The position numbers and the translations under genes were made by a program. The notes beneath the pieces were generated by a model that was not told where the DNA came from, made no database searches, and saw only the letters and a list, made by a program, of their open reading frames with translations. Of a stretch of 64,000 bases of DNA, positions 1,985 through 60,261 are shown one piece after another; position 1 is the stretch's first letter; each line of letters opens with the position of its first letter. Location: the IMG/VR virus record IMGVR_UViG_3300008261_000001, positions 226,180 through 290,179 of that record. One strand, written 5' to 3'.

Positions 1985-2386
1985 ATGACAAGCAGTTCGA
2001 TTGCTCCAGTGGATAAGACACAACCTCATTTCTGTATGTACACGATGGGCGAGCAGAAAAAGGATTGTTTTAACATCGAACTTGAGAAGCCCACTTGTTT
2101 ATCCAATCTCGACCCTATTAGTTGGGGGGATTGGGCGAATATGTCTCTCCAAAACAACCCCCTCTCCCACGGTTGTTTATTTTGGGGGGTGGTACATTTA
2201 AACTTCCCCACAGAGACACCCAATCCCCATGCCTTTTTAGCTATTTACGAGAGGGGTAAGCCTGTTATTTGTTTTTACTCCACCCTCGGTTTTAGCGAGC
2301 CCTTGAAGTTCTTGCCGTCTTCTTATTTATTCCCCGAGGGATGTTTTGATTTTGTAGACCACCTCTTAGAGTTCGCCCCTCAGTAA
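1985..2386 (+). CDS. Hypothetical protein
   Basis: 3' part of ORF 1700..2386; GGGAG before ATG at 1985. Confidence 0.55.
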   Translation: MTSSSIAPVDKTQPHFCMYTMGEQKKDCFNIELEKPTCLSNLDPISWGDWANMSLQNNPLSHGCLFWGVVHLNFPTETPNPHAFLAIYERGKPVICFYSTLGFSEPLKFLPSSYLFPEGCFDFVDHLLEFAPQ

Positions 2387-2389
2387 GTT

Positions 2390-3505
2390 TCAACCCCTAG
2401 TGGAAGGGTTCCAGTTTCCAATACGGGCATCGTAGTGCTTAATCTCTAGTTCTAATGAGTGTATATGGTTCTCAATAACCCCTGCTTTTCTGAGTTTCTC
2501 ACTCTTAACTGTTATGACTTCTTCCCTAGCCGCCTCTAGTTCTAACCTCAGCTTCAAAGATCTTTTTTCTTTGATCGTATCCTCCAGAAGCCTCTTTACG
2601 CCCTGTAGTCCTTCAACGGAGTCCTCTACGGGAGGGAACCCTGTACCGAAACAACCCGTAGAGGTTGTCCAATGCCTTATTATTTTATATCCGTGCTTTC
2701 GAATCATCTTATTAGCTGTGTTGACGGACCATACTTGAAAACAACCAGGACAAGTCCCTTCGTCTGCTCTCAATGTAGGTTTCTCGGTTGTGCCTACAAA
2801 TGAGCTACCCAAATAACTCTTTGCCTTTTCCACTCCGCCTTCCTTCACCACAAAGGCGATGAGCTTACTCAAGTCGAAGGATTGCAAACTATCCGTAATA
2901 GATAAGGTTAACTTAACCTTAGAAGATCCGCTAGATACAATCAGATTTTTAACGCCCTCTAAATAAGAGACATCATACCGTACATAAGTACTCCCAGATA
3001 CTTCAAAAATATCAACCTTCGAGGGGTCGAACACAAAGGCTATTTTTCCAAAAGGGATGCTCTTGGGCTTTGATCTGCTTACTGAAATGTTTGGGTCTTG
3101 TTCGTGTGTCCTTATTATGTGGCTTACAGCGGAGTTGGCACTCGCATTGTCCACCCTGTTCCTAAAAGGGATTGTATGTTGATCATGTTGTAACGACAAT
3201 CTATTGAAATCTATGTTGGGGTACAAACTTGGGAGTTGCTGATACAATCTGTTTATCAAATCCGACACTTCTTGTCTTTGTGCGACTTGTGTAGAATCTT
3301 CGGTTTTAACCCCGTATCCCAAAACGGTGAGAGCCTCTTGAAAGTGGTTTAGATTACCAACACTTGGCATCTTACTCGTCCTTGAGTGGTTTGCCAATGC
3401 TTGTATCATACCCTGTGCAGATGGGGATAGGCTATCACTAGCCTTACGCTCTAAACGAGCTAAACGATACTCAAGATTTCTTAAAACTTCGGATGCTGTT
3501 CTCAT
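2390..3505 (-). CDS. Hypothetical protein with MRTASEVLR leader and CxxC/H/C metal motif; possible virion-internal protein
   Basis: N-terminus shared with 51950..52273; CPGC...HGY...GCFG in the C-terminal part. Confidence 0.6.
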   Translation of the reverse strand: MRTASEVLRNLEYRLARLERKASDSLSPSAQGMIQALANHSRTSKMPSVGNLNHFQEALTVLGYGVKTEDSTQVAQRQEVSDLINRLYQQLPSLYPNIDFNRLSLQHDQHTIPFRNRVDNASANSAVSHIIRTHEQDPNISVSRSKPKSIPFGKIAFVFDPSKVDIFEVSGSTYVRYDVSYLEGVKNLIVSSGSSKVKLTLSITDSLQSFDLSKLIAFVVKEGGVEKAKSYLGSSFVGTTEKPTLRADEGTCPGCFQVWSVNTANKMIRKHGYKIIRHWTTSTGCFGTGFPPVEDSVEGLQGVKRLLEDTIKEKRSLKLRLELEAAREEVITVKSEKLRKAGVIENHIHSLELEIKHYDARIGNWNPSTRG

Positions 3506-3555
3506 ATTCATTACTCCAAGTTAGGGCATATCCTAACTGGAGTATAAAAAGATTA

Positions 3556-3840
3556 TCAGTAAGTGTGATCCCAAGATAGCCTAGCCTTACCTCGGAGCTT
3601 CTTAACAGCCCTCTCCGCTCTCATGGCTTCAGATCTGTTTGCATAGGTGCAATAGACACACATAAGCACCCACGGACGATACTTAGCTGTGTACTTAGCC
3701 CCACCAGCGATTTCTCCGTTGTGTTGCCTCAGTCGCCTCTCCACATTCGTCGTGCAACCCACATAATAAAAACCCTCTGCTGGCTTACCCTTCGCTGTGG
3801 TTCTCGGCATCTGACTTTGGATCACATAGACATACCACAT
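3556..3840 (-). CDS. GIY-YIG nuclease (Slx1/UPF0213-like)
   Basis: WYVYV...YYVGCTTNVERRLRQHNG..GGAKYT..RPW..SEAMRAE. Confidence 0.9.
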   Translation of the reverse strand: MWYVYVIQSQMPRTTAKGKPAEGFYYVGCTTNVERRLRQHNGEIAGGAKYTAKYRPWVLMCVYCTYANRSEAMRAERAVKKLRGKARLSWDHTY

Positions 3841-3892
3841 AGCATTCCTCCTATAATGGATAAGTAGATAGGACACCTATCCATTATAGAGA

Positions 3893-4498
3893 CTATCTGT
3901 GAAGCTGTCTGAGATATAGGTCGGCTATTTTTTGTGATGGACTCATGGGCTGTGTGGATCCAACCCTTCTTAGACTCGCCATGATTTGTCTGCCGTCTGC
4001 GTCTACCTCACGCTCAATCTTGAGAGCAGGTCTTCTGACTAAGTAGTTGGGCCACTTCTCAAACCACTTGGCGTAGAACTCGTCTTCCGCCACCTCACGA
4101 GTTGTCTTATCGGGGTTTGGGATATTGGGGTCTGCCACATGGACTATGTAGTTGCCCTTCTCTCCCGTCACATCGAAGATGAGGCTTGCATGGCTCCACT
4201 CTCGCCCCTCAGGGTTCCAAGCGATGAGGACTGGGTGTCCAGCGTCTGTCCACTCTTTGACTTGAGTGAGCGTAGCGGGAGTTGTGAGCGTTGCTCTACA
4301 ACCGAAGTACTGAGCACACGCTAGGACTTCTTCCCATCGAGCCCCTTGCATGGGTTTTGCACCGATGACCGAGTTTACTTCGTCTTCGGTGCATTTCACT
4401 CCTACTGCATTTAGTGCCATACAGGTGGAGGTGGCGACACAAGAGAACTGAGTTCTTTGGCGGATAGGACTTACATCTGCTTTGGCTAATCTTCTCAT
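3893..4498 (-). CDS. C39-like cysteine peptidase
   Basis: Q..QFSC, HAS, VADPN catalytic Cys/His/Asp arrangement. Confidence 0.8.
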   Translation of the reverse strand: MRRLAKADVSPIRQRTQFSCVATSTCMALNAVGVKCTEDEVNSVIGAKPMQGARWEEVLACAQYFGCRATLTTPATLTQVKEWTDAGHPVLIAWNPEGREWSHASLIFDVTGEKGNYIVHVADPNIPNPDKTTREVAEDEFYAKWFEKWPNYLVRRPALKIEREVDADGRQIMASLRRVGSTQPMSPSQKIADLYLRQLHR

Positions 4499-4562
4499 GC
4501 TAGTAGTCTCCTACTTGGACTTATGCTTATCCAATAGGTGATGTATAGAGACTCTAGTAGAT

Positions 4563-4991
4563 TTATCCAATCACTACGCAGTATCCAGAGCTTGGGTACT
4601 GCTTCTTTAAGGATTTCCAGACCCTATCCGCTTGCTCGGAGGTGGAGCCTCTAACGCTACATTTTTCTGGTATAATAACGAACGGCTTTCCAATCTCTTT
4701 CAGCCATCCTTTTATGAGTTGATTGTAGATTTCTGATCCAATGCCTTTTCCGTGATATTCTTTATTTAGGCTCACCACATTTACTTCGAGTATCCGTATG
4801 TCTTCTCCGTCCATGACTTTTGGATACTCGTAGCTAATGTCGATGAGGTCATCGGAGCAGGCGTAGGTGTGGACTACCTCCAACATGGATATGGAGTTTC
4901 CATAAGCCCTAGCAAGACCTATAGACTCACCATCGTCTTTCACCTCTACAAACACATTAGTTGGTGTTGTGGATATGGAGTAGGTGATCAT
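4563..4991 (-). CDS. GNAT-like acetyltransferase
   Basis: LNKEYHGKGIGSEIY acetyl-CoA motif A; ADRVWKSL. Confidence 0.65.
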   Translation of the reverse strand: MITYSISTTPTNVFVEVKDDGESIGLARAYGNSISMLEVVHTYACSDDLIDISYEYPKVMDGEDIRILEVNVVSLNKEYHGKGIGSEIYNQLIKGWLKEIGKPFVIIPEKCSVRGSTSEQADRVWKSLKKQYPSSGYCVVIG

Positions 4992-5660
4992 TTACTCTTC
5001 TTCTGTAGTGGTAGCGGTCTTCTTACCCCCTTTTGCAGAAGTCGAAGCACTAGATGAAGGGCTAGACTTGGTTGAGTACTTTAGCTCCATCTCCACAGCG
5101 TAGAGCTTCTTCTCTAAGTTCGACAGATCGGTGTCTACCTTGCTTTGAAGAGCGTCTGTTTTGCTCTGCACAGCGTCTAGCTTTTTGGATAAGCCATCTT
5201 GCTGTGTGGAGAGGGTGTCGAGCTGTTTTGACGCATTATTGGATAGTGTCTCGATCTCGCCTTTAAGAGTTCCGTAGGTCGCTTGAGCGATATCCATTTT
5301 CTCTAGATACTTTTTGCCCAAGAAGCCGACCACAAGGACAATGGCAAGCCACACATTGTCTCCAGCTAGGCGAACTACTTGTACAAGGTCTAGATCTCCG
5401 CCTTGTGTGTTCTGTTGAACCATTGGCTGTTGAACCATTGGCTGTTGTTGAGGGACACTTACAGGCTGATAAGTCTGTGGGGTGACAGCCACCACAGGTA
5501 CTTCTACGGGCTCTGTATCGCCAACAGAAGGTGCTTCCTCCTTAGAGGCATGGAGGAACTTGCACTCGGACAAGTCCGCCACCTTTGTCTTTCCGTCTAT
5601 GACCCAAAGGTTGCCCTCACGAGTGATGACGGGGTTTTTGGTTTTGATTACGCAAGTCAT
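4992..5660 (-). CDS. Membrane-anchored coiled-coil protein (paralogue of 9208..9873), possible lysis accessory
   Basis: Cys-bounded N-terminal domain, P/Q linker, one TM, coiled coil; overlaps the endolysin stop. Confidence 0.6.
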   Translation of the reverse strand: MTCVIKTKNPVITREGNLWVIDGKTKVADLSECKFLHASKEEAPSVGDTEPVEVPVVAVTPQTYQPVSVPQQQPMVQQPMVQQNTQGGDLDLVQVVRLAGDNVWLAIVLVVGFLGKKYLEKMDIAQATYGTLKGEIETLSNNASKQLDTLSTQQDGLSKKLDAVQSKTDALQSKVDTDLSNLEKKLYAVEMELKYSTKSSPSSSASTSAKGGKKTATTTEEE

Positions 5661-6100
5661 TTAGCCGCCCCCGATCTCTCGTCCCACCTTGCACCCTGCT
5701 TGTGTCCTGTAGCCTCACTTCTGACATCGTAGTGACAGAAATCGTCATAGACACCCAAGCCCCCATTGTACACCTTGCCCTCTTTGATGAGCTTGGTGAT
5801 GAGGGTGTGTACTTGTGTGGAGGTCATACCCTTGATTTTGATATCAGCGGCGGCGGCTTGTAGGTGGAGGGACTTGTCTTTCCCACCCACTGCCGCGTTG
5901 CGGGCGGCAGAACGATAACCACTTATGATGGTTATAGGTGCGTTAGCCGCTTCTCGGATAACCTGTAGGTTTTCCAATAGAAGGGTCGCGTTAGCCATAA
6001 ACTCAGGCGGGATTACATCGTAGAACTCAAGCTCTGAGTACTTGAAGTTCTTAGTGCAGGAAATATTTGTCTTTTGATCTTGAGAGAGGGGTGACGACAT
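5657..6100 (-). CDS. Peptidase M15A (Zn D-Ala-D-Ala peptidase family), putative endolysin
   Basis: ISGYRS..N..VGG..SLH...AADI, GLGVY..FCHYD. Confidence 0.9.
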   Translation of the reverse strand: MSSPLSQDQKTNISCTKNFKYSELEFYDVIPPEFMANATLLLENLQVIREAANAPITIISGYRSAARNAAVGGKDKSLHLQAAAADIKIKGMTSTQVHTLITKLIKEGKVYNGGLGVYDDFCHYDVRSEATGHKQGARWDERSGAAK

Positions 6101-6147
6101 GACTTACACTCCTATTGGGTTGTGTAAGTCCCCCCTATCATAAAAGG

Positions 6148-6549
6148 TTAATGATAAATATGTCCGAAGTCTGGGCAGTCACCACGGATGTCGAAGAACT
6201 CAGCTTTGGGGTTTTCGTTCTTTTCGAAGTCGATGAGGTCGAACTGATAAGACGAGACATTGTCTGACCCCTCGTTTTTGTAAATAGTAACGAGGACAAC
6301 CTCAGTGTTGTCCTCTTTGATTAAGATAGCCACCATCACGAAGCCTCCCTTCTCTAACAGAAGGTGTCTAGTGTAGTCCCCCCAACAGCAGATATCGGCA
6401 TGGACTTCCTCTGGAGCTTCGAGCCGTACTAGACCTTGAGAACCACCGAGTTTGAACATATACGGAGGCATATCGGATAGTTTTGGTGATTCTGGGCTGA
6501 CGAGTATCCCTCGAACTGCTTTTAAGATTTCCGCATTTGATGGGAGCAT
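6148..6549 (-). CDS. Hypothetical protein
   Basis: 133-aa ORF in the same orientation as its neighbours. Confidence 0.55.
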   Translation of the reverse strand: MLPSNAEILKAVRGILVSPESPKLSDMPPYMFKLGGSQGLVRLEAPEEVHADICCWGDYTRHLLLEKGGFVMVAILIKEDNTEVVLVTIYKNEGSDNVSSYQFDLIDFEKNENPKAEFFDIRGDCPDFGHIYH

Positions 6550-6622
6550 ATAACCAACTTTCTATTAAGAGCAACGACAGCAATATTACCCATTATAGCT
6601 ATCTAACGAGGATAAACCCGAG

Positions 6623-6655
6623 AAAAAGAAAAAGGGCTGATTTCTCAGCCCTTTT
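6623..6655 (-). terminator. Intrinsic (potentially bidirectional) terminator after tRNA-Lys
   Basis: aaaagggctga-tttc-tcagccctttt stem with T-runs on both strands. Confidence 0.8.
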
Positions 6656-6656
6656 A

Positions 6657-6729
6657 TGGGTCCTCTGGGGCTCGAACCCAGAACTAACGGATTAAAAGTC
6701 CGCTACTCTACCGATTGAGTTAAGAACCC
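6657..6729 (-). tRNA. tRNA-Lys(UUU), CCA not encoded
   Basis: GGGTTCT..AGGACCC acceptor stem, GCGGA-CTTTTAA-TCCGT anticodon arm, GTTCGAG T-loop. Confidence 0.95.
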
Positions 6730-6738
6730 TTGTTGTAG

Positions 6739-6768
6739 CCCTTATACCACATAAATCAAACCTAGCAA
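6739..6768 (-). promoter_or_regulatory. Sigma70-like promoter for tRNA-Lys
   Basis: TTGCTA...TGGTATAAGGG; the same TGGTATAAGGG lies upstream of tRNA-Thr (~7176-7186). Confidence 0.55.
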
Positions 6769-6777
6769 AAAAAATAG

Positions 6778-7091
6778 TCCAACCCCTCGCCAACTCCCGA
6801 AGGTTGACTGAGGGGTTGTGGGGTGGAGCGACTTCCCTGTCTATCTGAGTCCACATAACGCCCCTGTGTCGCCATACTGCTTCCCTTATCGTCTCCCCCT
6901 ATAGGTTGGGTTCAGAACCTCCCAACCTATAGGGCTTATCTAGCTTGCTTAGACACATTAAACACCTAGAGTCAGGATCTAGGTGCTTGGGGCTAGACAG
7001 ATCGATAAAGATATACATTTAGGTGTAAGCCCCTAAATGACGCATACCATCACCGCTTACTGCGTTTAAGGTGGCTTCTAGACCCCTTAAA
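6778..7091 (-). ncRNA. Unidentified highly structured RNA between the tRNAs
   Basis: At least six stems (one perfect 14 bp), cUUCGg tetraloop, crossing long-range pairings, G-U pairs favouring the minus strand, no ORF. Confidence 0.65.
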
Positions 7092-7092
7092 G

Positions 7093-7165
7093 TGCCACCT
7101 ACAGGATTTGAACCTGTGACATCCTGTTTACAAGACAGGTGCTCTACCAACTGAGCTAAGGGGGC
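7093..7165 (-). tRNA. tRNA-Thr(UGU), CCA not encoded, C4-U69 mismatch
   Basis: AGCTCAGTTGGTAGAGC D-arm, CCTGT-CTTGTAA-ACAGG anticodon arm, GTTCAAA T-loop. Confidence 0.93.
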
Positions 7166-7203
7166 GTGTGCTTACCCTTATACCAAACCCCTCCCCCTCA
7201 AAC

Positions 7204-7596
7204 TCAAATAAATTTATCTAGTATCGGCTTTCTGTCCTTTGGGTGGAGCTTGCAGTTAGAAAGATACGAGAACGGAACCCATTTCCACTCGTCATTTTCG
7301 TTATCCAATATGGGAGTAAACTTAGTCGATACTTCTGCCAAATAGAGCGTGTACCCCGAGCCATACAACTCGTCGTAAATCTGAAAAGGAACCTTCTCCA
7401 CTCCAATCAAGTTCTCTGAAGGATCTCCCCCTACCTCTTCGTAGAGTTCACGCATAGCTGTTTCGTAGTGCGTCTCCCCGCCCTCGGTTTTACCTCCAGG
7501 GAAGTTCCAATATCCGCTCCATCTGTCCTCTGTTTTGGATACCCTTCTTAGAATCAGCGTGTCCCCACCGCTTATGAACATAACACCTGCACCCAT
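7204..7596 (-). CDS. NUDIX hydrolase
   Basis: PGGKTEGGETHYETAMRELYEEVG Nudix box. Confidence 0.92.
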   Translation of the reverse strand: MGAGVMFISGGDTLILRRVSKTEDRWSGYWNFPGGKTEGGETHYETAMRELYEEVGGDPSENLIGVEKVPFQIYDELYGSGYTLYLAEVSTKFTPILDNENDEWKWVPFSYLSNCKLHPKDRKPILDKFI

Positions 7597-7684
7597 AGCG
7601 ACTCCTTTTATGTTTAGGTTGTAGGTTTTATTACCATAATAAACCTTTTATGTTTTTTCAGCCTAAACAATCGGAGAGAAAAAG

Positions 7685-8053
7685 ATGAAGTACTTATATC
7701 ACTACGAAGCTGAGGTGTTATCCGTTTACGATGGGGACACCTGTACCCTACAGATTTGCTGTGGGTTCGATATGTACACAAGGGTGACTTTTAGACTCAC
7801 AGGCATAGACACCGCTGAGATGAAGTCCAAAGACCCCTTAAAGAAAGAGGCAGCTCTACAAGCTAGAGACCACCTCAGAAGTCGTATCCTCGGCAAGAAG
7901 GTCATCGTCAACACTAGAGAGCGAGAGAAATACGGAAGGTGGCTTGGATACATTTGGGCAGACGAGGGACAAGATGAACTAGGGGAGTCCATCAACGACG
8001 AGATGATTCGTCTCGGTCATGCCAAGCCCTACGATGGTGGTAAGAAAGAATAA
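7685..8053 (+). CDS. Thermonuclease (SNase-like)
   Basis: VYDGDT, RLTGIDTAE, EKYGRWLG, GHAKPYDGG. Confidence 0.92.
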   Translation: MKYLYHYEAEVLSVYDGDTCTLQICCGFDMYTRVTFRLTGIDTAEMKSKDPLKKEAALQARDHLRSRILGKKVIVNTREREKYGRWLGYIWADEGQDELGESINDEMIRLGHAKPYDGGKKE

Positions 8054-8059
8054 ACTGCT

Positions 8060-8716
8060 CTATAGAGCTTTAGGGGAGGGTACTAAGGGTATTAGCTTAT
8101 CAAAGCCCTTAAAAGCAGACTTGTGGGTTACATCATTACTTTTAATCAGTGTGTCGCTATAGTTATCAGAGTCGTTTAAGACGCTAACATCTGCAATACC
8201 ACAGATGTAAAAATCTAGTCCCTCCTTCATTACGATCACTTGAGGGTACTCGTGCTTTTTAGCCGTGATAGAAGGTTTCTTCAGCAAAGGATAGTCGTAC
8301 TGATCCCCCTCTTTAGACCCAGTCTTAACGCCTATGGATAAACCACCACGCTCTAGATCTGGACTGTCGAAGTCAGCAGACTCACCCACAGAGAAATCTA
8401 CCACCTCTCTGTGGTCTAACCCAAGATACACACAGACTGCTATCTCACCTAGCTTTCCTGTAGTATGCCTCTTCCTTATAGACCCACCATCGTTTTTGTA
8501 CCCACCCTCACCCCTCTTTTTCTCTATGATGGGTGAGACCATCTCGGATACATACTGTTCAATATCTTCTGTTAGGGTGATTTTTGGTTTATCCGACACA
8601 TATTTCCAAATAGTATGTGGGTTGTTTTGTGACCACCTTGATTTGTTTAGCCTCTCCGCCCAATCGCCATTCTTGTCCTCATCCCCCAAGCTCTCTAGAA
8701 TCTTATCTAAGCTCAC
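8060..8716 (-). CDS. Putative PD-(D/E)xK-fold nuclease
   Basis: GKLGEIAV...SPDL...IGVKT; GTG start with AGGAGG. Confidence 0.45.
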   Translation of the reverse strand: MSLDKILESLGDEDKNGDWAERLNKSRWSQNNPHTIWKYVSDKPKITLTEDIEQYVSEMVSPIIEKKRGEGGYKNDGGSIRKRHTTGKLGEIAVCVYLGLDHREVVDFSVGESADFDSPDLERGGLSIGVKTGSKEGDQYDYPLLKKPSITAKKHEYPQVIVMKEGLDFYICGIADVSVLNDSDNYSDTLIKSNDVTHKSAFKGFDKLIPLVPSPKAL

Positions 8717-8827
8717 GCTGACCTCCTTTGGTTTCTCGTAGTTATTATGGGATTTAGGTGCTTAATAATTTGTTTATATACCCACAAAACATTGTCCAAA
8801 TAACCCCAACAAGAGAGTATATAGAGT

Positions 8828-9211
8828 ATGCCCCTAGTCCATCAGCACATCGTTGTCCGCTCCCATGTCATGAAGCCTCCCATGAGCGAGGAGGAGACGA
8901 AGAACTGGCTCAAAGAGCTTATTTCTAAAATCGACATGAAGATCCTAAACGGTCCTCATGCGACTTATTTAGATAAAGAGGGTAATAGGGGTGTGACGGG
9001 CGTCTGCATTATCGAGACTTCTCACATTGCAATCCATGTGTGGGATGAGGAGTCTCCAGGTCTTATTCAGCTTGATGTGTACTCGTGTAAGGACTTCGAC
9101 AAAGAGGTGGTGTTCAAGCACTTTGAGTGCTTTGAGCCTGTCTCGACCGAGTGGTTCATGCTCGACCGCACCGACAAGTTATCCATTACGGACGACATAC
9201 AGAAGAAATGA
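8828..9211 (+). CDS. speD: S-adenosylmethionine decarboxylase proenzyme
   Basis: GVTGVCIIETSHIAIHVW..QLDVYSC (pyruvoyl-forming Ser, catalytic Cys). Confidence 0.88.
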   Translation: MPLVHQHIVVRSHVMKPPMSEEETKNWLKELISKIDMKILNGPHATYLDKEGNRGVTGVCIIETSHIAIHVWDEESPGLIQLDVYSCKDFDKEVVFKHFECFEPVSTEWFMLDRTDKLSITDDIQKK

Positions 9212-51945: not shown

Positions 51946-51949
51946 GCGT

Positions 51950-52795: not shown

Positions 52796-52829
52796 GAGGG
52801 GTGAGCTAGTAGGAGGGGTGAGCTAGTAG
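52793..52829 (+). repeat. 17-bp tandem duplication
   Basis: taggaggggtgagctag twice, then tag. Confidence 0.85.
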
Positions 52830-52871
52830 ATTGTTTATGAGCCAAACACCTACAAGAAAGGTGCGTGGCTC

Positions 52872-53258: not shown

Positions 53259-53260
53259 TT

Positions 53261-53641
53261 ATGCCAACCTATGATTTCTCATGTACCTCTTGCGAGGCTC
53301 ACTACACCAAATCCCTTCGTATGTCTGAGCGTGACTCAGAGACTCGTTGTCCTGAGTGTGGAGACTTAGGGCGTAGGGTTCCCTCTTTACCTCAGTTCAT
53401 CCTTGTGGGTGATGGGTGGACAGGTAAGAACCTTAGGGTGAAGCAGCAGATGCAAGAGAAGAACAACAAGCTAGAGACACGGCAGAATGAAATGAAGCGT
53501 GATGCTCCCGCAGTGACTCTTGCACCGAATGTGGATGGGGAGAGGGTGGACTCTTGGTCTGACGCACAAAAGCTCGCCAAGTCAAAGGGCAAGAACGCAG
53601 ATAGCTACAACGCACTCGTGCAGAAAGAGCAGGCTAAATAA
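53261..53641 (+). CDS. FmdB-family zinc-ribbon protein
   Basis: MPTYDFSCTSC..CPECG..FILVGDGW. Confidence 0.8.
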   Translation: MPTYDFSCTSCEAHYTKSLRMSERDSETRCPECGDLGRRVPSLPQFILVGDGWTGKNLRVKQQMQEKNNKLETRQNEMKRDAPAVTLAPNVDGERVDSWSDAQKLAKSKGKNADSYNALVQKEQAK

Positions 53642-54351
53642 TGTCTAGGGGTCGCTTAATACCAAGCCTTAACTATCGCTCCAAAGGACTGATAGATGTC
53701 TCTATACCGAATGCCTCATTAAGGGGTATGGACGAGATAAGGGTTTATGGAGCGTCAAATCTAAATGACGCTTTCAACAACCCCTTAGAAATCTTACGCA
53801 CTAAGTACGATGTGAACTTTAAGAGTTCGTCTATTTTATCTCAGCGGTTGAGGGTCGAGGAGAGCAATAGAGACTTAACTCGTATGGTTTTTAACCTCAA
53901 CGACTTCTCTACAGCACCTGCAAACCCTCGTATCCCAACTGACGAAGAGGTGTGTTTTATCCGACTGAGGGGTCGCATGAAGGCTACTGGGGAGCTTACT
54001 GACTTTGGTCCTGTGGTCGTAGTCGTACCCTATGACTTCTTTAGCGTGACTGCACCCATATTTACGGTTGTAGGTACTGCACCGGACATAAACTCTGGTG
54101 GGGTACCAGATAACTTGGGTATTGGATCTATGAATATCCATTTACCTTACTTCAGTCAGACGATAAGCGTTCAGAATCTAGACGATACGGACAGCTTGTA
54201 TGTGTCTTGTGCTCCAGGAATGAGTCCAACGATTATTCGCCCCTTGGATACTTTGGGCATAACGGGTGGTGCAGTGCCTGAGTTCTTTTTAGCTGGTGAT
54301 GGAGCGACTCCTCAGTTCACCATAAGGGCGAGTCTTGTAAATAGAGGTTAA
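53641..54351 (+). CDS. Hypothetical, probably structural protein
   Basis: Beta-rich 236-aa ORF in the late cluster. Confidence 0.5.
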   Translation: MSRGRLIPSLNYRSKGLIDVSIPNASLRGMDEIRVYGASNLNDAFNNPLEILRTKYDVNFKSSSILSQRLRVEESNRDLTRMVFNLNDFSTAPANPRIPTDEEVCFIRLRGRMKATGELTDFGPVVVVVPYDFFSVTAPIFTVVGTAPDINSGGVPDNLGIGSMNIHLPYFSQTISVQNLDDTDSLYVSCAPGMSPTIIRPLDTLGITGGAVPEFFLAGDGATPQFTIRASLVNRG

Positions 54352-54371
54352 TAATGGATAAGTGGTGTTAA

Positions 54372-54387
54372 TAATAGTTCGTTTATA
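54372..54387 (+). promoter_or_regulatory. Candidate late promoter TAATAG-N3-GTTTATA
   Basis: Near-identical copies at 61079, 8763 and 52338 (minus strand). Confidence 0.6.
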
Positions 54388-54435
54388 ACAAGGCGTATTG
54401 TTAACGGATAACGATAACCCTCTAGGAGAGACAAT

Positions 54436-55143
54436 ATGCCATACATCATCGCAAGGCGTTCTGAGATTCAAAATGGCTCGGTGCAGATCACGGACTTGTT
54501 CCCTAATCAGAGCCAAGCCAACCCCATGATAGACCCTGCACCTCAAGGTCCTTTCTATGTAAGAGTTCCCAATATTGGGGATACAGGTAAGTATCGTCCT
54601 GTGTTGGTGACTTTAGGTGATGGCTCGATTGTGTTTGGTCGTGAGTCTCATGGCTTAACATCTTACATCATCAAAAACATAGACGCATCTCCAGCGGGCG
54701 GTGACACCACCGTAACCGTCACACAAGCAGAAGAAATCGCTTCTGCCCTTTTAACAAGGGCGAGGGGTGGTTTGGCACTCGCTGAGGCGAATATCAACGC
54801 GGTCTTGGTGGCGACTCTAGGTGCAGGAGCCGCGATAGATGCAGGTGACTCTACTGCGAGCGTAGATGTTATCCTTCAGATCCTTTCTGGTGAGTCTTAT
54901 GTTGTGCCTTATGGCTACACCGTTCAGACAGCCGGTGGTGACCATGTGGTTGTCATTTCGGATAGTAGCCTCGGCTCTACCGTTAGAAGGCTCGTGGAGA
55001 GGGATACCTCGTGGCAAGTATCTTTCAATGAGGGTTGCCTTGCAGGTTTAGTGGCGGCTCGTCCTAATGGCTTTGCAGGCAATACAGCCACCACCCCCCT
55101 CGTTGCTGTCTATAACGCTGACGGCACCATCTACAACGGATAA
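54436..55143 (+). CDS. Putative virion protein, paralogue 1 of 3
   Basis: QITDLFPNQSQANP..DPAPQGP ... VYNADG. Confidence 0.6.
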   Translation: MPYIIARRSEIQNGSVQITDLFPNQSQANPMIDPAPQGPFYVRVPNIGDTGKYRPVLVTLGDGSIVFGRESHGLTSYIIKNIDASPAGGDTTVTVTQAEEIASALLTRARGGLALAEANINAVLVATLGAGAAIDAGDSTASVDVILQILSGESYVVPYGYTVQTAGGDHVVVISDSSLGSTVRRLVERDTSWQVSFNEGCLAGLVAARPNGFAGNTATTPLVAVYNADGTIYNG

Positions 55144-55154
55144 GGAGTCTAACC

Positions 55155-55850
55155 ATGCCTTTCGTATGCACACCTAGAGTCACCAACTCAACGGATAGTG
55201 GCGTTGCACTTCAGATTACTGACTTGTTCCCCCACAAGACTCAGTCCAACGCTGTCATTACCCCCCGCTTTCAAGGTCCTCGCTACCTTTACGCTCATGG
55301 CAGAGCTTTGACTCAGACCGTAGCCCTCAATGGTGCTTTCAACACGACCGCAGCATTTACGGGTCTAGCGGCTTATATTCTCGCCACCATCGAGAACACC
55401 GCCGCCGCAGGCGTGTGCTTAACTGCCGCACAAGCGAATAACATCGCTTCGGACATCCTCTCTCTCATGGAAGCGGGAGAGGCTCTTACTGTATCCGCTA
55501 TCAACGCTGAGATTAGTGACCGCACGGGTGGTGGAGCCAACGGTATTGGTCTAGGGGACTCGACCGCTACCGTCTTGCAGATCCTTCAGATTGTGTCAGG
55601 CTACAAGGTATTCACCCTCCCCAACAACACCTCTGTAGGTGGTGTCGGTGGTGCCTTCGAGGCACCTGCTGTGGGTGGGTTCTTTGCTGACCCTGCGGAT
55701 GTAGCGAGCCTTTGGACCTCGTTCGATTCGAGCTTCTACCTCTCCGCTCGTAGTGGACAGCTAAAGAAAGCTCAGACCCGCGTGGACGCTAACGGAAACT
55801 CGGCTCCCTTCGTTGTCTGTTATGCAGATGACGGCACACTCATTCAGTAA
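55155..55850 (+). CDS. Putative virion protein, paralogue 2 of 3
   Basis: QITDLFP..QSN...QGPRY ... YADDG. Confidence 0.6.
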   Translation: MPFVCTPRVTNSTDSGVALQITDLFPHKTQSNAVITPRFQGPRYLYAHGRALTQTVALNGAFNTTAAFTGLAAYILATIENTAAAGVCLTAAQANNIASDILSLMEAGEALTVSAINAEISDRTGGGANGIGLGDSTATVLQILQIVSGYKVFTLPNNTSVGGVGGAFEAPAVGGFFADPADVASLWTSFDSSFYLSARSGQLKKAQTRVDANGNSAPFVVCYADDGTLIQ

Positions 55851-55863
55851 GGACTAAGACACC

Positions 55864-56490
55864 ATGAATAACCCCGTTATTTGCTTACGCGATGCGAATA
55901 TCCCCAACGGCTCACTTATGATTAAGGATATGTGGCCAAACAGGTCACAAGCGAACCCTGTGGTCGATCCAGCACCTCAGGGTCCTCGTTATATCCGTCA
56001 GCCTGAGAACACCCTTCCTGTGGTAAATGCTTTAGCTGTGGCTAGAGAAGTAAGTGGTCTTGCCGCTTATCTCTTAGTCACCGTAGATGCAGACGGTGCC
56101 AACTTCACAGGTGCAGAAGCCAAAGAAGCGGCTGACGCCATCATCACCGCCATGAGAGCGGGCGATGCACTTGCGGAAGCAGACCTCAACGACATCCTCG
56201 ATGGTGTTGTTGCGGGAGCAGGTATTGTCGGCACAGGGAACTCCACCGCCACCGTGGGGAACATCCTCGCTGTCCTCGGTGGGGCTAAGTTCGTAGTACC
56301 AGCCGGTACCGATGTAGACGATGCTTATCTGACTGAGGCAGAGCAAGAGGCTTTGTTCGATACAGGTGCCTATGCTCCCATCGTTAACGAGGACTCTAGC
56401 TTTTGGATTTCTTTAGAGCAAGGGAATCTCTTTAAGGCTAAGACTAACGACTTCGTAGTCGTTTACGATGTCGATGGTTCTGTTCTCTGA
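55864..56490 (+). CDS. Putative virion protein, paralogue 3 of 3
   Basis: IKDMWPNRSQANPVVDPAPQGPRY ... VYDVDG. Confidence 0.6.
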   Translation: MNNPVICLRDANIPNGSLMIKDMWPNRSQANPVVDPAPQGPRYIRQPENTLPVVNALAVAREVSGLAAYLLVTVDADGANFTGAEAKEAADAIITAMRAGDALAEADLNDILDGVVAGAGIVGTGNSTATVGNILAVLGGAKFVVPAGTDVDDAYLTEAEQEALFDTGAYAPIVNEDSSFWISLEQGNLFKAKTNDFVVVYDVDGSVL

Positions 56491-56506
56491 GATTGGATAG
56501 GATAGA

Positions 56507-56731
56507 TTGAAAGTATCATTATCCGATAAAAAAGCTGTGGGTGCGTTCCTTCAAGGTGAGAGCTTTGAAGGAAGGGTGTTAGTATCCACGGGTAAAGAGC
56601 TAAGAGCCACATGGGGCAATAAGCCTTTAGTGGCACATTGGAAAGACGGAAAAGTTATCCAATGTGTCTCTGAGGACAAGGGAGTTAAGAGGGCATTGGA
56701 AATAATGGATAGTTTGGGGATAAAGGGCTGA
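56507..56731 (+). CDS. Hypothetical protein
   Basis: TTG start, AGGA RBS. Confidence 0.5.
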   Translation: MKVSLSDKKAVGAFLQGESFEGRVLVSTGKELRATWGNKPLVAHWKDGKVIQCVSEDKGVKRALEIMDSLGIKG

Positions 56732-56735
56732 GTTT

Positions 56736-56990
56736 ATGGACTTCGAGCCTGCGGAGCTTTACAAGACTTCGGACTTGTATTTTGCCGCGTTCTTGAAGTC
56801 TGCGGGCTTAGACCTACTTACCTCTGAGGTATTGGATAAGAAGGTCGTTTTTGTCTTTGAGAAAATAGATTTAATAAAAGACCTCAAACGCGAGTACTTC
56901 AACCGCACCGCTCGCGTATCTGCTTTGACCTTTGTGGACGAAATAAGAAATCTTAAATCTCTCACCCACATGACTAGAGAAGGTTCTTAA
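56736..56990 (+). CDS. Small phage protein (DUF5659-like)
   Basis: YKTSDLYFAAFL...VVFVF...LKS pattern. Confidence 0.55.
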   Translation: MDFEPAELYKTSDLYFAAFLKSAGLDLLTSEVLDKKVVFVFEKIDLIKDLKREYFNRTARVSALTFVDEIRNLKSLTHMTREGS

Positions 56991-57040
56991 AGGCTTTATA
57001 CCCCTTGTATTGGATAAAACCTAGAGGGGGTTTAAGCAAT

Positions 57041-57400
57041 ATGACACCAGCAGTTATTCATGTAGAAGAGGGCAAGTCTGTTCCATGTTCGGTGGGGTGG
57101 ACGGACTCTATTGGTCGTCCATTAGAGGTGGAGGATGTTCAAGCGTCACTTTACACCTATAACGGAAATGTAAGGAGCGTATTGGTCGAGCCAGCGTTGA
57201 TGATACAGACGGATCAGACGCATAGGTACATACTGAGGTTTGTGATACCTGAGGGGTACTTGGGCAAGTACTTGTATGTGGAGTTTACGGCTAATCTCGT
57301 ATCGGATAACTCAGCTTTGTCCTCTGATTTAATCCTTTATGTGATAGACCCATTATCCGATGGGGGTATAACCCCTAGCCCCATCGTAAGGGTTTTGTAA
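57041..57400 (+). CDS. Ig-like putative structural protein
   Basis: Beta-strand pattern; GAGGGG RBS before ATG 57041. Confidence 0.5.
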   Translation: MTPAVIHVEEGKSVPCSVGWTDSIGRPLEVEDVQASLYTYNGNVRSVLVEPALMIQTDQTHRYILRFVIPEGYLGKYLYVEFTANLVSDNSALSSDLILYVIDPLSDGGITPSPIVRVL

Positions 57401-57467
57401 ATCGTTTATATTTAGCTATATAAGCCTATCTCTACAAAGATAGTCCTCTACACAAAGGATAATAAAA

Positions 57468-57779
57468 ATGAGCGTAAGAAAAGAACTGATTCGTATTGCC
57501 AACGAGAACCCTCACCTTCGTTCAGTGATCATCCCTGCGTTAAAGAAGAACGATCAGAGTGAGCTTGTTAGGGTTGCTCAGAGTATCTTGGCTGAAGAAG
57601 AGGCTGAAGCTCCTACATCGGCACCTGCTCCTGTAGAGCCAGAGGCTAAGACGGCATCTCAAGCTAAGACCGCTAAGGCTGATTTGGATGCGAATCTTCG
57701 CAAGCAGATTATCCGTTTGGCTTCTGAGCGTCCTGATCTTAGGGAAGTGCTTGTCCCTTTACTCAAGGCAACCAAGTGA
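57468..57779 (+). CDS. Small protein with duplicated RKxxIRxA.E.PxLR helix; possible scaffold or internal head protein
   Basis: Two copies of the motif separated by an acidic/Ala-Pro linker. Confidence 0.55.
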   Translation: MSVRKELIRIANENPHLRSVIIPALKKNDQSELVRVAQSILAEEEAEAPTSAPAPVEPEAKTASQAKTAKADLDANLRKQIIRLASERPDLREVLVPLLKATK

Positions 57780-58100
57780 ATGTCGGTTGTCTTTAGACAG
57801 AGGCAGGTGCTTGGTCCAAACGACCTTCGGATAGAGTTTTATCTGTCTGATGGGAGTCCTTTTGAGCCTTACTCTATCACTTATGCTTTTTATGGTGACG
57901 ATCCTTTGATGGGTAAATGGCGTGTAGGGAGTGCGGGTCGTATCCCCTTTCAAGAAGCTGAGGGTAAGTACTTTGTAGCAGAGACGCTCACCACAGCGTT
58001 TAAGCCTGGTGCTTACTACATAGAGTGGACTATGCAGAGGACAAGCACCTCTCCTTTAGAAATCGCTAAGAAGCAAGAGTTTGCGTTTGTAGCCGAGTAG
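57780..58100 (+). CDS. Ig-like putative structural protein
   Basis: GKYF...PGAYYIEW. Confidence 0.5.
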   Translation: MSVVFRQRQVLGPNDLRIEFYLSDGSPFEPYSITYAFYGDDPLMGKWRVGSAGRIPFQEAEGKYFVAETLTTAFKPGAYYIEWTMQRTSTSPLEIAKKQEFAFVAE

Positions 58101-58163
58101 ATTTTATCCATATTTCGTTTATATCTTTTACCTTTTTCAAACAGAAAGAGGTAGGTGATATAA

Positions 58164-58532
58164 ATGGGAAACTTTTGGATTAGAGAAAATGGTGTGAACA
58201 CGCTCAAGGGTGTAGAGGGCGAAGAGGGTAACTTTCCAATCTTGCCAGCCATTCTCATCGTCACCATGCTAAATGAAAATCAGCAGGCGAGAGACGACTT
58301 TGAGAAGTTGTTTCCGATGATGTCCCCCACAGAGCAAGAGCGTTTAACCGAGTTATTTTCTTTTACACGACCGCCCTTAGAGTATCCGCAGGTGGTTGAG
58401 GATAAGTTCCAAAAGGGTTTAAATAACCTAGTAGTAAGGAGTGTCACAAACCTACCGAGGAACATAAACAGGTCTGAAAATAAGTACTCGGGTACGGTCG
58501 TTAGGCTCTCAAGCCCTCCGAGGAGTAGATAG
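58164..58532 (+). CDS. Hypothetical protein
   Basis: GAGGTAGGTG RBS inside a hairpin. Confidence 0.55.
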   Translation: MGNFWIRENGVNTLKGVEGEEGNFPILPAILIVTMLNENQQARDDFEKLFPMMSPTEQERLTELFSFTRPPLEYPQVVEDKFQKGLNNLVVRSVTNLPRNINRSENKYSGTVVRLSSPPRSR

Positions 58533-58535
58533 TTT

Positions 58536-58889
58536 ATGTTGCTCACACCGCCACCCAAAAAGACTGAACCTAAAGACGAGGGTTTTGACTTGGAGGATCT
58601 GAACAGACTGCCCTTAAAGAGTAAAAAGTTCTTGGCTTATCTGATATCCGAGGTAGGTTGGAAATGCTCCCTTTTTGGGGTTTTATATCTCTATCGTGCT
58701 GAGATAGATTACTATGCTTTCTTTCTGTTGTTAGCCATCGTAGTGACGAATGGTTTCCTACAAATCGGATACATTTTGGGGGAGGTCGCTTTAGACAAGT
58801 ACAGCCGAGTAGCGGTTCAGGCAGTTAAAGGCAGAAAACAAAAGGGTGAGAAGTGGGATAAAGTCGTCATAGACGAGGAAGAGGATTAA
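58536..58889 (+). CDS. Two-TM membrane protein (holin-like)
   Basis: KSKKFLAYL followed by two hydrophobic helices, charged tail. Confidence 0.5.
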   Translation: MLLTPPPKKTEPKDEGFDLEDLNRLPLKSKKFLAYLISEVGWKCSLFGVLYLYRAEIDYYAFFLLLAIVVTNGFLQIGYILGEVALDKYSRVAVQAVKGRKQKGEKWDKVVIDEEED

Positions 58890-58893
58890 AGCC

Positions 58894-60261
58894 ATGAGTG
58901 CATCCACATCTTACGCTAATAAGACAACTAAAGCCCTAAAAGCCCTCGCTTTATCCCTAAGGCATTACAAGAAGCCATTACCATCATCGGATAAAGAAGA
59001 GCAAAGGGTTCACATCAAGGGCATATTGGATAAGATTAAAGAACTGCCGAATGTGGTTTTATTTTTAGATTCACACATAGGGAAAACACAAGTGAAGCCC
59101 GTTAAGTCGGGTCGGGCAGGTGCTGTAAGGCTACTTGCTCAGTACTTGGGTGGGAAGTTTTCTATTGTAGAGATGGAGGAGGCGGCGGTCGGTTTTTTCC
59201 AAAAGAACTACGAAGCTAGGGCTATTCATAGGGGGCAAGCTCCACTAAATGAAACGATACCCGAGAAGATTAAAGCGTTCCTACCACCTAAAATAGTGAT
59301 TAAATTGGATAACGATGGGTACATAAAGGAAATAACCGATATGTACGACAACGAGTCGTATGGGCTTTTAGAAAAAATAAACGCACAACAAAAGATACTG
59401 CGGGAGTACAAAACCATACAGAGGAAAGTATGGAATGGATTCGATTCAAAAGACGAGGCAGTTAAAAACTTATCCATTATTTTGGGTGTTATAATAGAGA
59501 CAGGGATTAGACCTGGGAGTAGGTCTAATGGGATAAAAGAGATACTGAGTGGTAAAGAGGTGAGAAAAGAGACTTTTGGTGCGGTCTCGTTGAAGAGAAA
59601 GCACTTGGTTTTATCCAAAGACGAAATCAAGCTAGAGTTCGAAGGAAAAAAGGGGACTATCAATAGGGCGACTATCAAGGATAAAAGACTTCTGATGGCT
59701 CTCAAAGGTGTCTGTGCGGAGAGGCGAGGGGGAGATCTGTACTTGTTTCCAGATGTGGAATATGAGGACTTAGCCAAGTTCTTCAAAAAGAACTTCGAGG
59801 GGTTGAAGATAACGGACTTTAGGAAGCTAAGAGCCACTAAAGAAGTTTACGATGGGTTAAAGGCAGAACAAGCTCGTTTGTTTAAGACCATTAAGGGGTT
59901 CGTTGGGTTAGAAGTAAAGAAGCAAGAGGAGATGGTGATTGACGCTATAGCCGATACGCTTAAGAGCGTACACTCAAAGGCTCAAACGGCACTCAGCCAT
60001 GAGTCCTCCAAAACCACTGAAAAGTCTTATATCAACCCACAGATCTTGTTGTCGTTTTTATCCAATGGTGGGCTTTTACCCTCTATCGAAGAGTGTGTCT
60101 TAGAGGGGAAAACACGACTTGTATTCGACATACAATCATTTCTTAAAAACTCTAAGCGTGTCGCCTCGGTTGGGGGGGTAAAATACCCTATAATGACTAC
60201 ATCTAAGGGACTCGACAGAAACCTATCGGATATCTTGTTCGATCTGATTGAGTGCCTCTAG
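58894..60261 (+). CDS. DNA topoisomerase IB (poxvirus/bacterial-type catalytic domain)
   Basis: ETGIRPG (R), FGAVSLKRKH, FEGKKG (K), DFRK (R), LSHE (H), KSYINP (Y). Confidence 0.85.
   Translation: MSASTSYANKTTKALKALALSLRHYKKPLPSSDKEEQRVHIKGILDKIKELPNVVLFLDSHIGKTQVKPVKSGRAGAVRLLAQYLGGKFSIVEMEEAAVGFFQKNYEARAIHRGQAPLNETIPEKIKAFLPPKIVIKLDNDGYIKEITDMYDNESYGLLEKINAQQKILREYKTIQRKVWNGFDSKDEAVKNLSIILGVIIETGIRPGSRSNGIKEILSGKEVRKETFGAVSLKRKHLVLSKDEIKLEFEGKKGTINRATIKDKRLLMALKGVCAERRGGDLYLFPDVEYEDLAKFFKKNFEGLKITDFRKLRATKEVYDGLKAEQARLFKTIKGFVGLEVKKQEEMVIDAIADTLKSVHSKAQTALSHESSKTTEKSYINPQILLSFLSNGGLLPSIEECVLEGKTRLVFDIQSFLKNSKRVASVGGVKYPIMTTSKGLDRNLSDILFDLIECL

Follow-up and report, generated by a model that had tools for sequence, protein, structure and literature searches.

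A jumbo phage genome densely populated by the short DNA word TATCC

Short DNA words that occur far more often than chance, and that lie inside genes as well as between them, are known from several biological settings. Chi sites are over-represented in bacterial chromosomes and in some lambdoid phages, where they are concentrated between the origin and the packaging site, and they have been proposed to separate self from non-self before a nuclease (PMC3784561). The uptake sequences of Pasteurellaceae (USS) and Neisseria (DUS) lie in both orientations and in all frames of genes, with a strict core and graded flanks, whilst HIP1 (GCGATCGC) of cyanobacteria is a palindrome iterated across the host chromosome whose core is a methyltransferase target, and an example of a methylation target that is over- rather than under-represented (PMC6604393). 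DnaA boxes (TTATNCACA, with a conserved 3' CACA) cluster at origins or at titration loci such as datA, and Type III, Type IIS-style or orphan amino-methyltransferases recognise short asymmetric sites, although the targets of known phage methyltransferases are not reported to be enriched in their own genomes. Here, we describe an uncultured jumbo phage that carries about 1,000 extra copies of the word TATCC (best form TTATCCAAT).

We analysed a stretch of 64,000 bp (hereafter the window), which is the last 64 kb of a single 290,179-bp phage contig (IMG/VR record IMGVR_UViG_3300008261_000001). An earlier note, made from the sequence alone, had reported a genome-wide enrichment of this word in both orientations, and this observation is confirmed. 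All 15 coordinates listed in that note are exact TTATCCAAT matches, and in total the window holds 39 copies (28 on +, 11 on -), against a mean of 0.58 and a maximum of 3 in 100 dinucleotide-preserving shuffles. TATCC/GGATA occurs 401 times in the window against 132 expected, and 38 times in the first 5 kb against 10.3 expected, where the note had given about 30 against 10. Across the whole genome, we counted 154 copies of the 9-mer (76 on + and 78 on -) against 2.9 expected, and 1,780 of TATCC against 594. The features of the window considered here are as follows.

573..60066 (no strand): span of the 39 exact TTATCCAAT copies in the window, within which lie 401 copies of the strict core TATCC/GGATA
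2099..2107 (+): example copy of TTATCCAAT
4527..4571 (+): two TTATCCAAT copies 36 bp apart (4527-4535 and 4563-4571); close pairs like this are no more frequent than chance
16754..16762 (-): example copy on the minus strand, lying antisense inside a plus-strand gene
45228..45818 (-): thymidine kinase, flanking the modification-type cluster
47070..48281 (+): SPPY amino-methyltransferase-like paralog 1 (403 aa), with a Trm11/RsmD/CamA-like Rossmann domain and a hypervariable N-terminal domain of about 185 aa; a candidate reader or writer of a dispersed word
48281..48991 (+): thymidylate-synthase-like (TS-like) protein (236 aa), part of a nucleotide/DNA-modification-type cluster, with no homolog in the word-free relative G001
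48963..49883 (+): PP-loop ATPase (Asn-synthase/QueC-like, 306 aa), with 0 TATCC sites against 5.5 expected and GC 0.38, so that it looks recently acquired
49843..50703 (+): PLP-dependent enzyme (PALP/threonine-dehydratase-like, 286 aa)
50725..51945 (+): SPPY amino-methyltransferase-like paralog 2 (406 aa, 55% identical to paralog 1)
48601..51074 (no strand): the most motif-poor stretch of the genome, with two gaps of 1,423 and 888 bp (genome coordinates 274780-276203 and 276365-277253), covering the TS-like, PP-loop and PLP genes
58894..60261 (+): type IB topoisomerase-like protein (455 aa), considered as a pentamer-specific reader and set aside because the word-free relative G001 has it too

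The word has a strict 5-bp core, and every single substitution within it returns the count to background. The flanks, on the other hand, are graded: not-A is preferred before the core, whilst after it come A>G, then A/T, with G almost excluded (2%), and then T>A. The signal is one of DNA rather than of protein coding, as sense and antisense counts are equal (802 against 817), all three frames are used, and density is 8.8 per kb in intergenic DNA against 5.9 per kb in coding DNA. The codon readings pointed out in the earlier note are real frame preferences, with TTA-TCC-AAT accounting for 61 of 85 sense copies and x-TTG-GAT-AA for 39 of 57 antisense copies. However, the note's own refutation test, a shuffle preserving amino acids and codon usage, does not refute the enrichment: after permuting synonymous codons within each gene, TATCC is 1,619 observed against 730 +/- 22, TATCCAA 422 against 81, and TTATCCAAT 142 against 12.5 (z = 37-47). 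Likewise, under a permutation that also preserves the genome's avoidance of 26 palindromes, TATCC falls to about 700.

The word behaves as a property of density rather than of special loci. Gaps are Poisson-like (mean 163 bp, median 114 bp), no paired spacing and no clusters appear, and per-gene counts are Poisson (chi2/df 1.14), with shared genes carrying 6.3 per kb and lineage-specific genes 5.1 per kb. Importantly, the sites are maintained: against a relative with 76% nucleotide identity, 60 of 106 sites sit at the same position against 24.9 expected (p = 3e-13), and synonymous differences fall to 24% inside the word against 40% outside. Only relatives with 91-100% identical TerL share the word (the records L013, L017, L079 and L117), whilst relatives with 75-80% identical TerL do not. 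Intriguingly, sister phages carry different words with the same properties. G010 has AGAAAGA at 764 against 39, strand-symmetric, in all frames and Poisson-spaced; G009 has CGCGCTC/GAGCGC; and G008-type phages have AGAAATA. The genome studied here also has a second word, AGAA(A/G/C)TCT, with 211 copies.

How does this word compare with the described systems? Like Chi, it is short, asymmetric and over-represented. However, it differs between sister phages and is absent from some of them, shows no polarity or regional concentration, and is not known to be shared by any host (that of this phage is itself unknown); moreover, its 54-fold excess as a 9-mer appears to exceed what is known for Chi in any chromosome. 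The comparison with uptake sequences is close in density, with about 530 copies of the 9-mer per Mb against what is probably roughly 800 per Mb for the Haemophilus USS core, and also in orientation, frame usage, strict core and graded flanks; accumulation through a drive is a plausible origin. Yet this is a tailed phage, with terminase, portal and baseplate genes and no uptake machinery, in which several words coexist, and we saw no inverted pairs of the kind that form terminators, there being no excess at any spacing from 1 to 60 bp in any orientation class. In contrast to HIP1, the word is asymmetric and phage-specific; a GCGATCGC-type sequence cannot occur in this genome because GCGC has 0 copies, and the HIP1-rich cyanobacterium examined here (G227) has no TATCC excess. 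The strict 5-bp asymmetric core with a defined excluded base nearby is shared with amino-methyltransferase recognition sites, as is the presence of multiple paralogous enzymes with variable recognition domains in the same genomes, although the pairing of enzyme and word is unproven.

The earlier note had remarked that the word matches the first 7 nt of a DnaA box, but this resemblance is not supported. TTATCCA, with 399 copies, does equal the first seven bases of the E. coli-type box TTATCCACA; the full box, however, occurs only 13 times against 154 for TTATCCAAT. Position 8 gives A 154, T 86, C 5 and G 2, and positions 8-9 prefer A/T then T rather than C then A. The invariant positions are 2-6, including position 5, which is degenerate in DnaA boxes, and not the T2/T4/CACA pattern. 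Maximum local counts equal the Poisson expectation in windows of 100-500 bp, leaving no origin-like cluster, and sister phages use unrelated words. We consider a DnaA decoy effectively refuted by sequence.

The note's more general inference, that of a dispersed DNA-level binding or modification site, holds, although which of its listed options is right could not be settled. We posit that TATCC is a recognition word set by the phage lineage itself, and not by protein coding, codon usage or a general host factor, with self-marking as the mechanism we think most likely; we give this reading a probability of only about 0.35. In this scenario, a phage-encoded sequence-specific enzyme would place a modified base at each word, so that phage DNA is densely and uniformly marked and shielded from nucleases, or distinguished from host DNA. 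Selection for mark density, possibly helped by a conversion-type drive, would then push every gene toward the word wherever the protein sequence allows. That a modification enzyme reads the word, which enzyme this is, and that a denser mark is what is selected are all inferences.

The best candidate enzyme is one of the lineage-restricted SPPY amino-methyltransferase-like paralogs, which sit beside the TS-like/PP-loop/PLP modification-type cluster. There are three paralogs in this genome, with an amino-methyltransferase fold, in which the catalytic half is conserved (58-69% identity) and the N-terminal half diverges (30-48%). The family is absent from the word-free, 95-100% complete genomes G001, G004 and G012, and present in all word-rich records with enough sequence; the split is 4 of 7 lineages against 1 of 17 (Fisher p = 0.014), although this test counts related lineages and is not phylogenetically independent. 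A phyletic-pattern screen also returned this family among only three gene families. However, the link is imperfect, as the family is present without any strong word in L112 (11-12 paralogs, with a PALP gene inside the array), L114-L116, G014, G019 and G331. Furthermore, genomes that share a word do not share a closely related N-terminal domain, which contradicts a simple pairing: our three paralogs reach at most 48% identity with the copies in the TATCC-rich relatives, and no G009-G010 pair exceeds about 50%, although both are rich in CGCGCTC. The nearest solved structures are tRNA m2G methyltransferases (Trm11), so an RNA substrate is not excluded, and we know of no precedent for a phage enriching its own methyltransferase's target.

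Other explanations seem less likely, but most cannot be dismissed. Perhaps the word is bound by an abundant sequence-specific protein, either a phage nucleoid, packaging or head-internal protein coating the chromosome, or a host protein titrated by the phage. A strict core with graded AT-rich flanks is typical of protein-DNA recognition, the sites are conserved, and the phage makes at least 11 proteins sharing one N-terminal peptide, probably a head-targeting signal, which would travel with the DNA. However, no candidate DNA-binding gene tracks the word: the phyletic screen gave only the methyltransferase-like family, a SLOG/DprA-like protein and a GGACT enzyme, and a profile search finds distant relatives of the SLOG protein in word-free genomes. 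Nor did we see a nucleation cluster, phasing or dimer spacing. A host-factor decoy, one of the options in the earlier note, is made less likely because it should be shared by phages of the same host, whereas the word is specific to one sub-lineage. Somewhat more doubtful is a Chi-like attenuator, in which TATCC(A) would be recognised on single-stranded DNA by a helicase-nuclease, either the host's RecBCD/AddAB or a phage enzyme, so that every few hundred bases of phage DNA would switch the nuclease from degradation to repair and make the phage look like self. The short, asymmetric, strictly defined and lineage-specific word with its flank effects would fit, and a uniform, strand-symmetric spread is what a circularly permuted genome exposed at random ends would need. 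Indeed, the phage is under extreme nuclease pressure (ACGT 0 of 1,127 expected, GCGC 0 of 911 expected), and it encodes UvrD-like and RecD2-like helicases, although no RecB/AddA-type nuclease domain was found in them. Against this, the phage has its own RecA-like recombinase (genome 101717-103009, 144 bits, over the family threshold), a class that avoids Chi in the lambdoid study (PMC3784561), and two or more words occur per genome. Sister phages with similar GC carry no word or a different one, including G001, whose palindrome-avoidance spectrum is moderately similar (r = 0.67) and which carries none. Amongst 301 sampled genomes of Cyanobacteriota, the only phylum scanned, none shows the excess, the single outlier for an extended 11-mer proving to be a repeat family with TATCC at 0.92 of expectation.

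Neutral molecular drive is less likely still. Here, a sequence-specific repair or conversion activity, such as context-specific mismatch correction of the very-short-patch type, would keep converting near-cognate sequences into the word with no benefit per site. This is in line with the uniform, Poisson-like distribution, which is at least as dense outside genes and extends even to accessory genes, with the mild depletion of one-substitution neighbours (TATAC 0.36, TATTC 0.62 and GATCC 0.60 of expectation), and with words that seem to rise and decay among lineages, several per genome at different strengths. A Vsr/DUF559-superfamily nuclease is encoded at genome 221969-222913; however, it scores below the Vsr family threshold, the word-free G001 has it at 69% identity, and it was not found in the word-rich G010 or G009. 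Neighbour depletion is also not confined to C-to-T transition neighbours, as very-short-patch repair would predict, and no C5-methyltransferase was identified among the part of the proteome scanned. Lastly, a by-product of amino-acid content, codon usage or palindrome avoidance is refuted by the permutations above (z about 40 in both), even if codon-shuffled genomes still hold somewhat more TATCC (730) than the base-composition expectation (594), and one other enriched word, AAGCTC, is partly explained by avoidance of AAGCTT and GAGCTC (231 rises to about 300, against 478 observed). G001 avoids palindromes similarly (GCGC 0) yet has no TATCC excess, which in our phage is also present in intergenic DNA.

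Considering these words together, it is tempting to speculate, and we regard this as possible rather than likely, that a clade of uncultured jumbo phages uses lineage-specific 'self words'. Each lineage would write its own 5-7-bp asymmetric word (TATCC here; AGAAAGA, AGAAATA and GAGCGCG in sisters) every 150-400 bp on both strands of its whole chromosome, and a fast-evolving phage-encoded reader, which could be a sequence-specific modification enzyme or a word-attenuated nuclease, would use the word density to tell phage DNA from host DNA. This would be a viral, rapidly diversifying counterpart of Chi/USS-type self-recognition, with words that are born, spread over a genome and decay.

The 290,179-bp contig, of which the window is the last 64 kb (226180-290179), has a GC content of 47.3% and belongs to a virus record judged 93% complete. 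It encodes a large terminase, portal, baseplate J and sheath-initiator proteins, a DnaB-like helicase, a family-A-type DNA polymerase, ribonucleotide reductase, RecD2-like and UvrD-like helicases, and a RecA-like recombinase, and is therefore an uncultured jumbo myophage. Searches of the annotated phage collection with window DNA and with a window protein returned no close annotated relative; the best match by terminase is an unannotated 485-kb metagenomic phage at 64% identity, whilst the nearest isolate is Tunturiibacter phage Tunturi_5, at only 29%. IMG/VR holds a large clade of related contigs of 100-530 kb, with GC ranging from 31 to 64%. Alongside these genes lie several features that bear on the virion or are of unknown function:

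Window 13714-40640 (+): a run of very large structural genes of 1,100, 2,451, 1,066, 1,862 and 1,722 aa, including baseplate J and a protein with a Laminin-G/ConA-like lectin domain, probably baseplate and fibre proteins.
Window 54436-56490 (+): three tandem paralogs of about 210-235 aa of unknown function (54436-55143, 55155-55850, 55864-56490), one homolog of which occurs in the TATCC-rich relative L117.
Window 2390-3511 (-) and 51950-52327 (-), and genome 21576, 22022, 121208, 149811, 150466, 160291, 172006, 212036, 218975 and others: at least 11 otherwise unrelated proteins that start with, or contain near the start, the same peptide of about 19 aa, MRTASEVLRSLEARIARLE, which ends in L-E, like the T4-type prohead-protease cleavage and capsid-targeting signals, and is probably a head-targeting propeptide for internal virion proteins.

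Every coordinate listed in the earlier note, which had reported a genome-wide enrichment of this word, is an exact TTATCCAAT. The window holds 39 copies against 0.58 expected, and the genome 154 (76 on + and 78 on -) against about 3 expected; indeed, the most abundant 7- to 12-mers of the genome are all overlapping versions of one word. Dissection of this word shows a strict pentamer core, TATCC, which occurs 1,780 times against 594 by base composition and against 1,131 under a maximal-order Markov model, and any single substitution in the core returns the 9-mer or 7-mer to background. The flanks, on the other hand, are graded: before the core the order is T>C>G>>A, and after it A>G>T>C, then A or T (G only 2%), then T>A, then a weak A.

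Importantly, this is a DNA-level signal. Within genes the core is as common antisense (817) as sense (802), it occurs in all three frames, with preferences that reflect which codons can spell it and where TAA would be a stop, and it is denser between genes (8.8 per kb) than within them (5.9 per kb). When synonymous codons were permuted within each gene, which keeps every protein and each gene's codon usage, we obtained 730 +/- 22 TATCC against 1,619 observed, and 12.5 against 142 for the 9-mer. The test that the earlier note had named as a possible refutation, i.e. loss of the enrichment under an amino-acid- and codon-preserving shuffle, therefore does not refute the finding, and a codon or amino-acid artefact is rejected.

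A second possible artefact arose from the extraordinary degree to which this genome avoids palindromes, as shown by the following counts.

Palindrome avoidance in the window and in the whole genome (word: window observed; genome observed; genome expected)
ACGT: 0; 0; 1,127
GCGC: 0; 0; 911
AATT: 15; 87; 1,394
CCGG: 9; 33; 911
GGCC: 5; 48; 911

In addition, 23 of the 64 hexamer palindromes are absent and 40 are below 10% of expectation, and related phages, including a marine one with GC 39%, share parts of this spectrum (ACGT, GCGC, AATT). However, a synonymous-swap Markov chain that never lets the number of 26 avoided words rise still brings TATCC down to about 700 and the 9-mer to about 12, and the distant relative G001 avoids palindromes in a similar way but has no TATCC excess. 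The enrichment is therefore not a side effect of avoidance.

Along the genome, sites are spread as a Poisson process, with a mean gap of 163 bp and a median of 114 bp, and the largest gaps are about as large as expected. No preferred spacing appears in any orientation class from 1 to 60 bp, no local cluster exceeds simulation, and no strand polarity is seen along the chromosome; searches for helical phasing, nucleation clusters or a composite site with the second word of this genome likewise gave nothing. Per-gene counts fit a Poisson model with chi2/df of 1.14, and genes shared with G001 carry 6.3 sites per kb, whilst lineage-specific genes carry 5.1 per kb. Only a few low-GC genes are nearly empty, one being a PP-loop gene (window 48963-49883) which probably arrived recently. 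The word therefore behaves as a property of the whole DNA molecule, and not as a set of special loci.

Among 60-odd related loci, only near-identical contigs and those with 91% identical terminase share the excess, at 3.2-3.7-fold (L013, L017, L079 and the 110-kb contig behind L117), whilst relatives with 75-80% identical terminase show none. Our genome and L079 are only 76% identical in DNA; even so, 60 of our 106 aligned sites carry the word at the same position in L079, against 24.9 expected from phase-matched pentamers (p = 3e-13), and codons inside the word show 24% synonymous differences against 40% elsewhere, so the sites are maintained. Against word-free relatives, homologous positions carry the word only at background, and the codons involved differ mostly synonymously, with a small rise in replacements (25% against 20%).

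Intriguingly, the phenomenon is not unique to this word, as under the same codon-preserving null sister phages have words of their own. The sister phages G010/G007 have AGAAAGA at 764 against 39 by composition (z = 39), strand-symmetric, in all frames, denser between genes, and with a Poisson gap median of 242 against 249 expected. G009, a further sister phage, shares CGCGCTC/GAGCGC with G010, G008-type contigs have AGAAATA, and one contig (L036, from G005) has AGTTC, whereas the complete or nearly complete genomes G001, G004 and G012 have no comparable word. Our genome also carries a second, weaker word with a strict core, AGAA(A/G/C)TCT, with 211 copies genome-wide in all frames and both orientations, and no fixed distance to TATCC; within the window there are 28 AGAAATCT copies against 2.5 expected, the AGAATTCT form being missing, presumably because AATT is avoided, and the AGAAATA and AGAAAGA of sister phages are related words. 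GCGC has zero copies in G000, G001, G004 and G006, but stands at 1.2-2.4 times expectation in G010 and G009.

To ask what might read the word, we looked for genes that track its presence. The window holds two paralogs (55% identical) of a roughly 405-aa protein with methyltransferase motifs I and IV (SPPY), and a third lies elsewhere in the genome:

Window 47070-48281: SPPY methyltransferase-like paralog.
Window 50725-51945: SPPY methyltransferase-like paralog.
Genome 217753-218973: third paralog.
Window 45948-51945: gene cluster comprising a 191-aa protein, a 173-aa protein, an SPPY methyltransferase-like protein, a thymidylate-synthase-like (TS-like) protein, a PP-loop ATPase, a PLP enzyme and an SPPY methyltransferase-like protein; the cluster from the 173-aa gene onward (window 46537-51945) is absent from G001.
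Window 58894-60261 (+): a 455-aa protein with a eukaryote/poxvirus-type topoisomerase IB catalytic domain.
Genome 186911-187384 (-), outside the window (L010:6911-7384): P0121, a 157-aa fast-evolving SLOG/DprA-like protein whose glycine-rich loop is degenerate in this phage.
Genome 221969-222913 (-), outside the window (L012:1969-2913): a 314-aa protein with a C-terminal DUF559/MTES_1575/Vsr-superfamily nuclease domain, GC 0.39 and zero TATCC sites, 69% identical to a gene in G001; it looks like a mobile or recently acquired nuclease gene.

A confident structural model (pLDDT 90.6) places the C-terminal half of the SPPY protein among amino-methyltransferases (Trm11, TrmN, RlmL and the DNA adenine methyltransferase CamA), whilst the N-terminal 185 residues match nothing. 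Paralogs are 58-69% identical in the catalytic half but only 30-48% in the N-terminal half, a pattern expected of a target-recognition domain. The genes between the two window paralogs, with thymidine kinase beside them, look like a nucleotide or DNA-modification cluster, and similar methyltransferase-like arrays elsewhere include PALP and Asp/Arg-hydroxylase genes (the contig L112). The family is large, with 801 or more proteins and at least 593 matching stretches in IMG/VR, and forms arrays of up to 11-12 paralogs on one contig. Among terminase relatives, full-length members occur in every word-rich record with enough sequence and in none of the word-free complete genomes; the split is 4 of 7 lineages against 1 of 17 (Fisher p = 0.014, not phylogenetically corrected). 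A screen for genes of our phage present in both G010 and G009 and absent from G001, G004 and G012 returned only three families: this one, a gamma-glutamyl-cyclotransferase-like protein, and the SLOG/DprA-like protein.

However, this link has its weaknesses. Several contigs carry the family without any strong word (L112, L114-116, G014, G019 and G331), and genomes that share a word do not share a closely related N-terminal domain; our attempt to match methyltransferase N-terminal domains to shared words found no pairing. P0121 was considered as the best phyletic correlate, with a close subfamily that occurs only in word-rich phages, but is weakened as a candidate by distant homologs in the word-free genomes G019, G011 and G330, and by only 42% identity between the two TATCC-rich phages. 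Conversely, no gene was found to be common to the word-free genomes and missing from the word-rich ones. The topoisomerase, considered as a pentamer-specific reader by analogy with poxvirus topoisomerase, was set aside because the gene is also present in word-free G001.

Whilst a modification enzyme remains our preferred candidate, other readings deserve consideration. A Chi-like attenuator fits the form of the word and has a precedent in lambdoid phages, yet the phage has its own recombinase, sister phages differ, and no host with the word was found among 301 sampled Cyanobacteriota genomes. The single outlier among these, a 4.1-Mb chromosome (G227:C1), has 55 dispersed copies of the 11-mer CTTATCCAATA, against 3 for the reversed control, but TATCC at 0.92 of expectation, so that this is presumably an unrelated repeat family containing that 11-mer and not the same phenomenon; the genome is also HIP1-rich (GCGATCGC at about 174 times expectation). 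Nor did we find a phage RecBCD/AddAB-like machine, as only UvrD-like and RecD2-like helicases were found, with no nuclease domain detected. A coating or decoy protein would fit the graded flanks, but has no candidate gene. A neutral conversion drive fits the uniform Poisson spread, although the only Vsr-superfamily nuclease scores below threshold and is found in G001 too. We regard each of these as possible but unlikely, whilst the DnaA-box and compositional explanations are refuted by sequence.

The observation is thus confirmed, and is far beyond chance or coding constraints. The general idea in the earlier note of a dispersed binding or modification site survives; the DnaA-box idea does not. 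We posit that the most likely mechanism is a phage-determined recognition word kept at high, uniform density as a self-mark, probably through sequence-specific DNA modification, although this specific mechanism remains tentative (a probability of about 35%); the broader statement, that a fast-evolving phage-encoded reader, rather than the host, sets the word, we consider likely. We found no description of such lineage-specific dispersed words in phages in what was a limited literature search, which is not proof of novelty.

Dispersed over-represented words such as Chi, USS/DUS, KOPS and HIP1 are among the few cases where the sequence of a whole genome is shaped by one molecular reader, and are known almost only from bacterial chromosomes. 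Here, the same kind of signature appears in a virus, where it reaches USS-like density, is stronger than any codon-level effect, and shows different words in sister phages; the specificity of the reader must therefore turn over quickly while about a thousand sites follow it. It also provides a practical signature for binning these phages and linking metagenomic contigs, and the accompanying total absence of ACGT and GCGC shows how strongly oligonucleotide content is selected in this group. If the reader is a modification enzyme, this would be, to our knowledge, the first case in which a phage enriches its own modification target, which points to a density-dependent protective or self-marking function; if it is a nuclease attenuator, it would be a phage-owned Chi system. 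Either way, three candidate genes and a defined word offer a direct handle on this biology.
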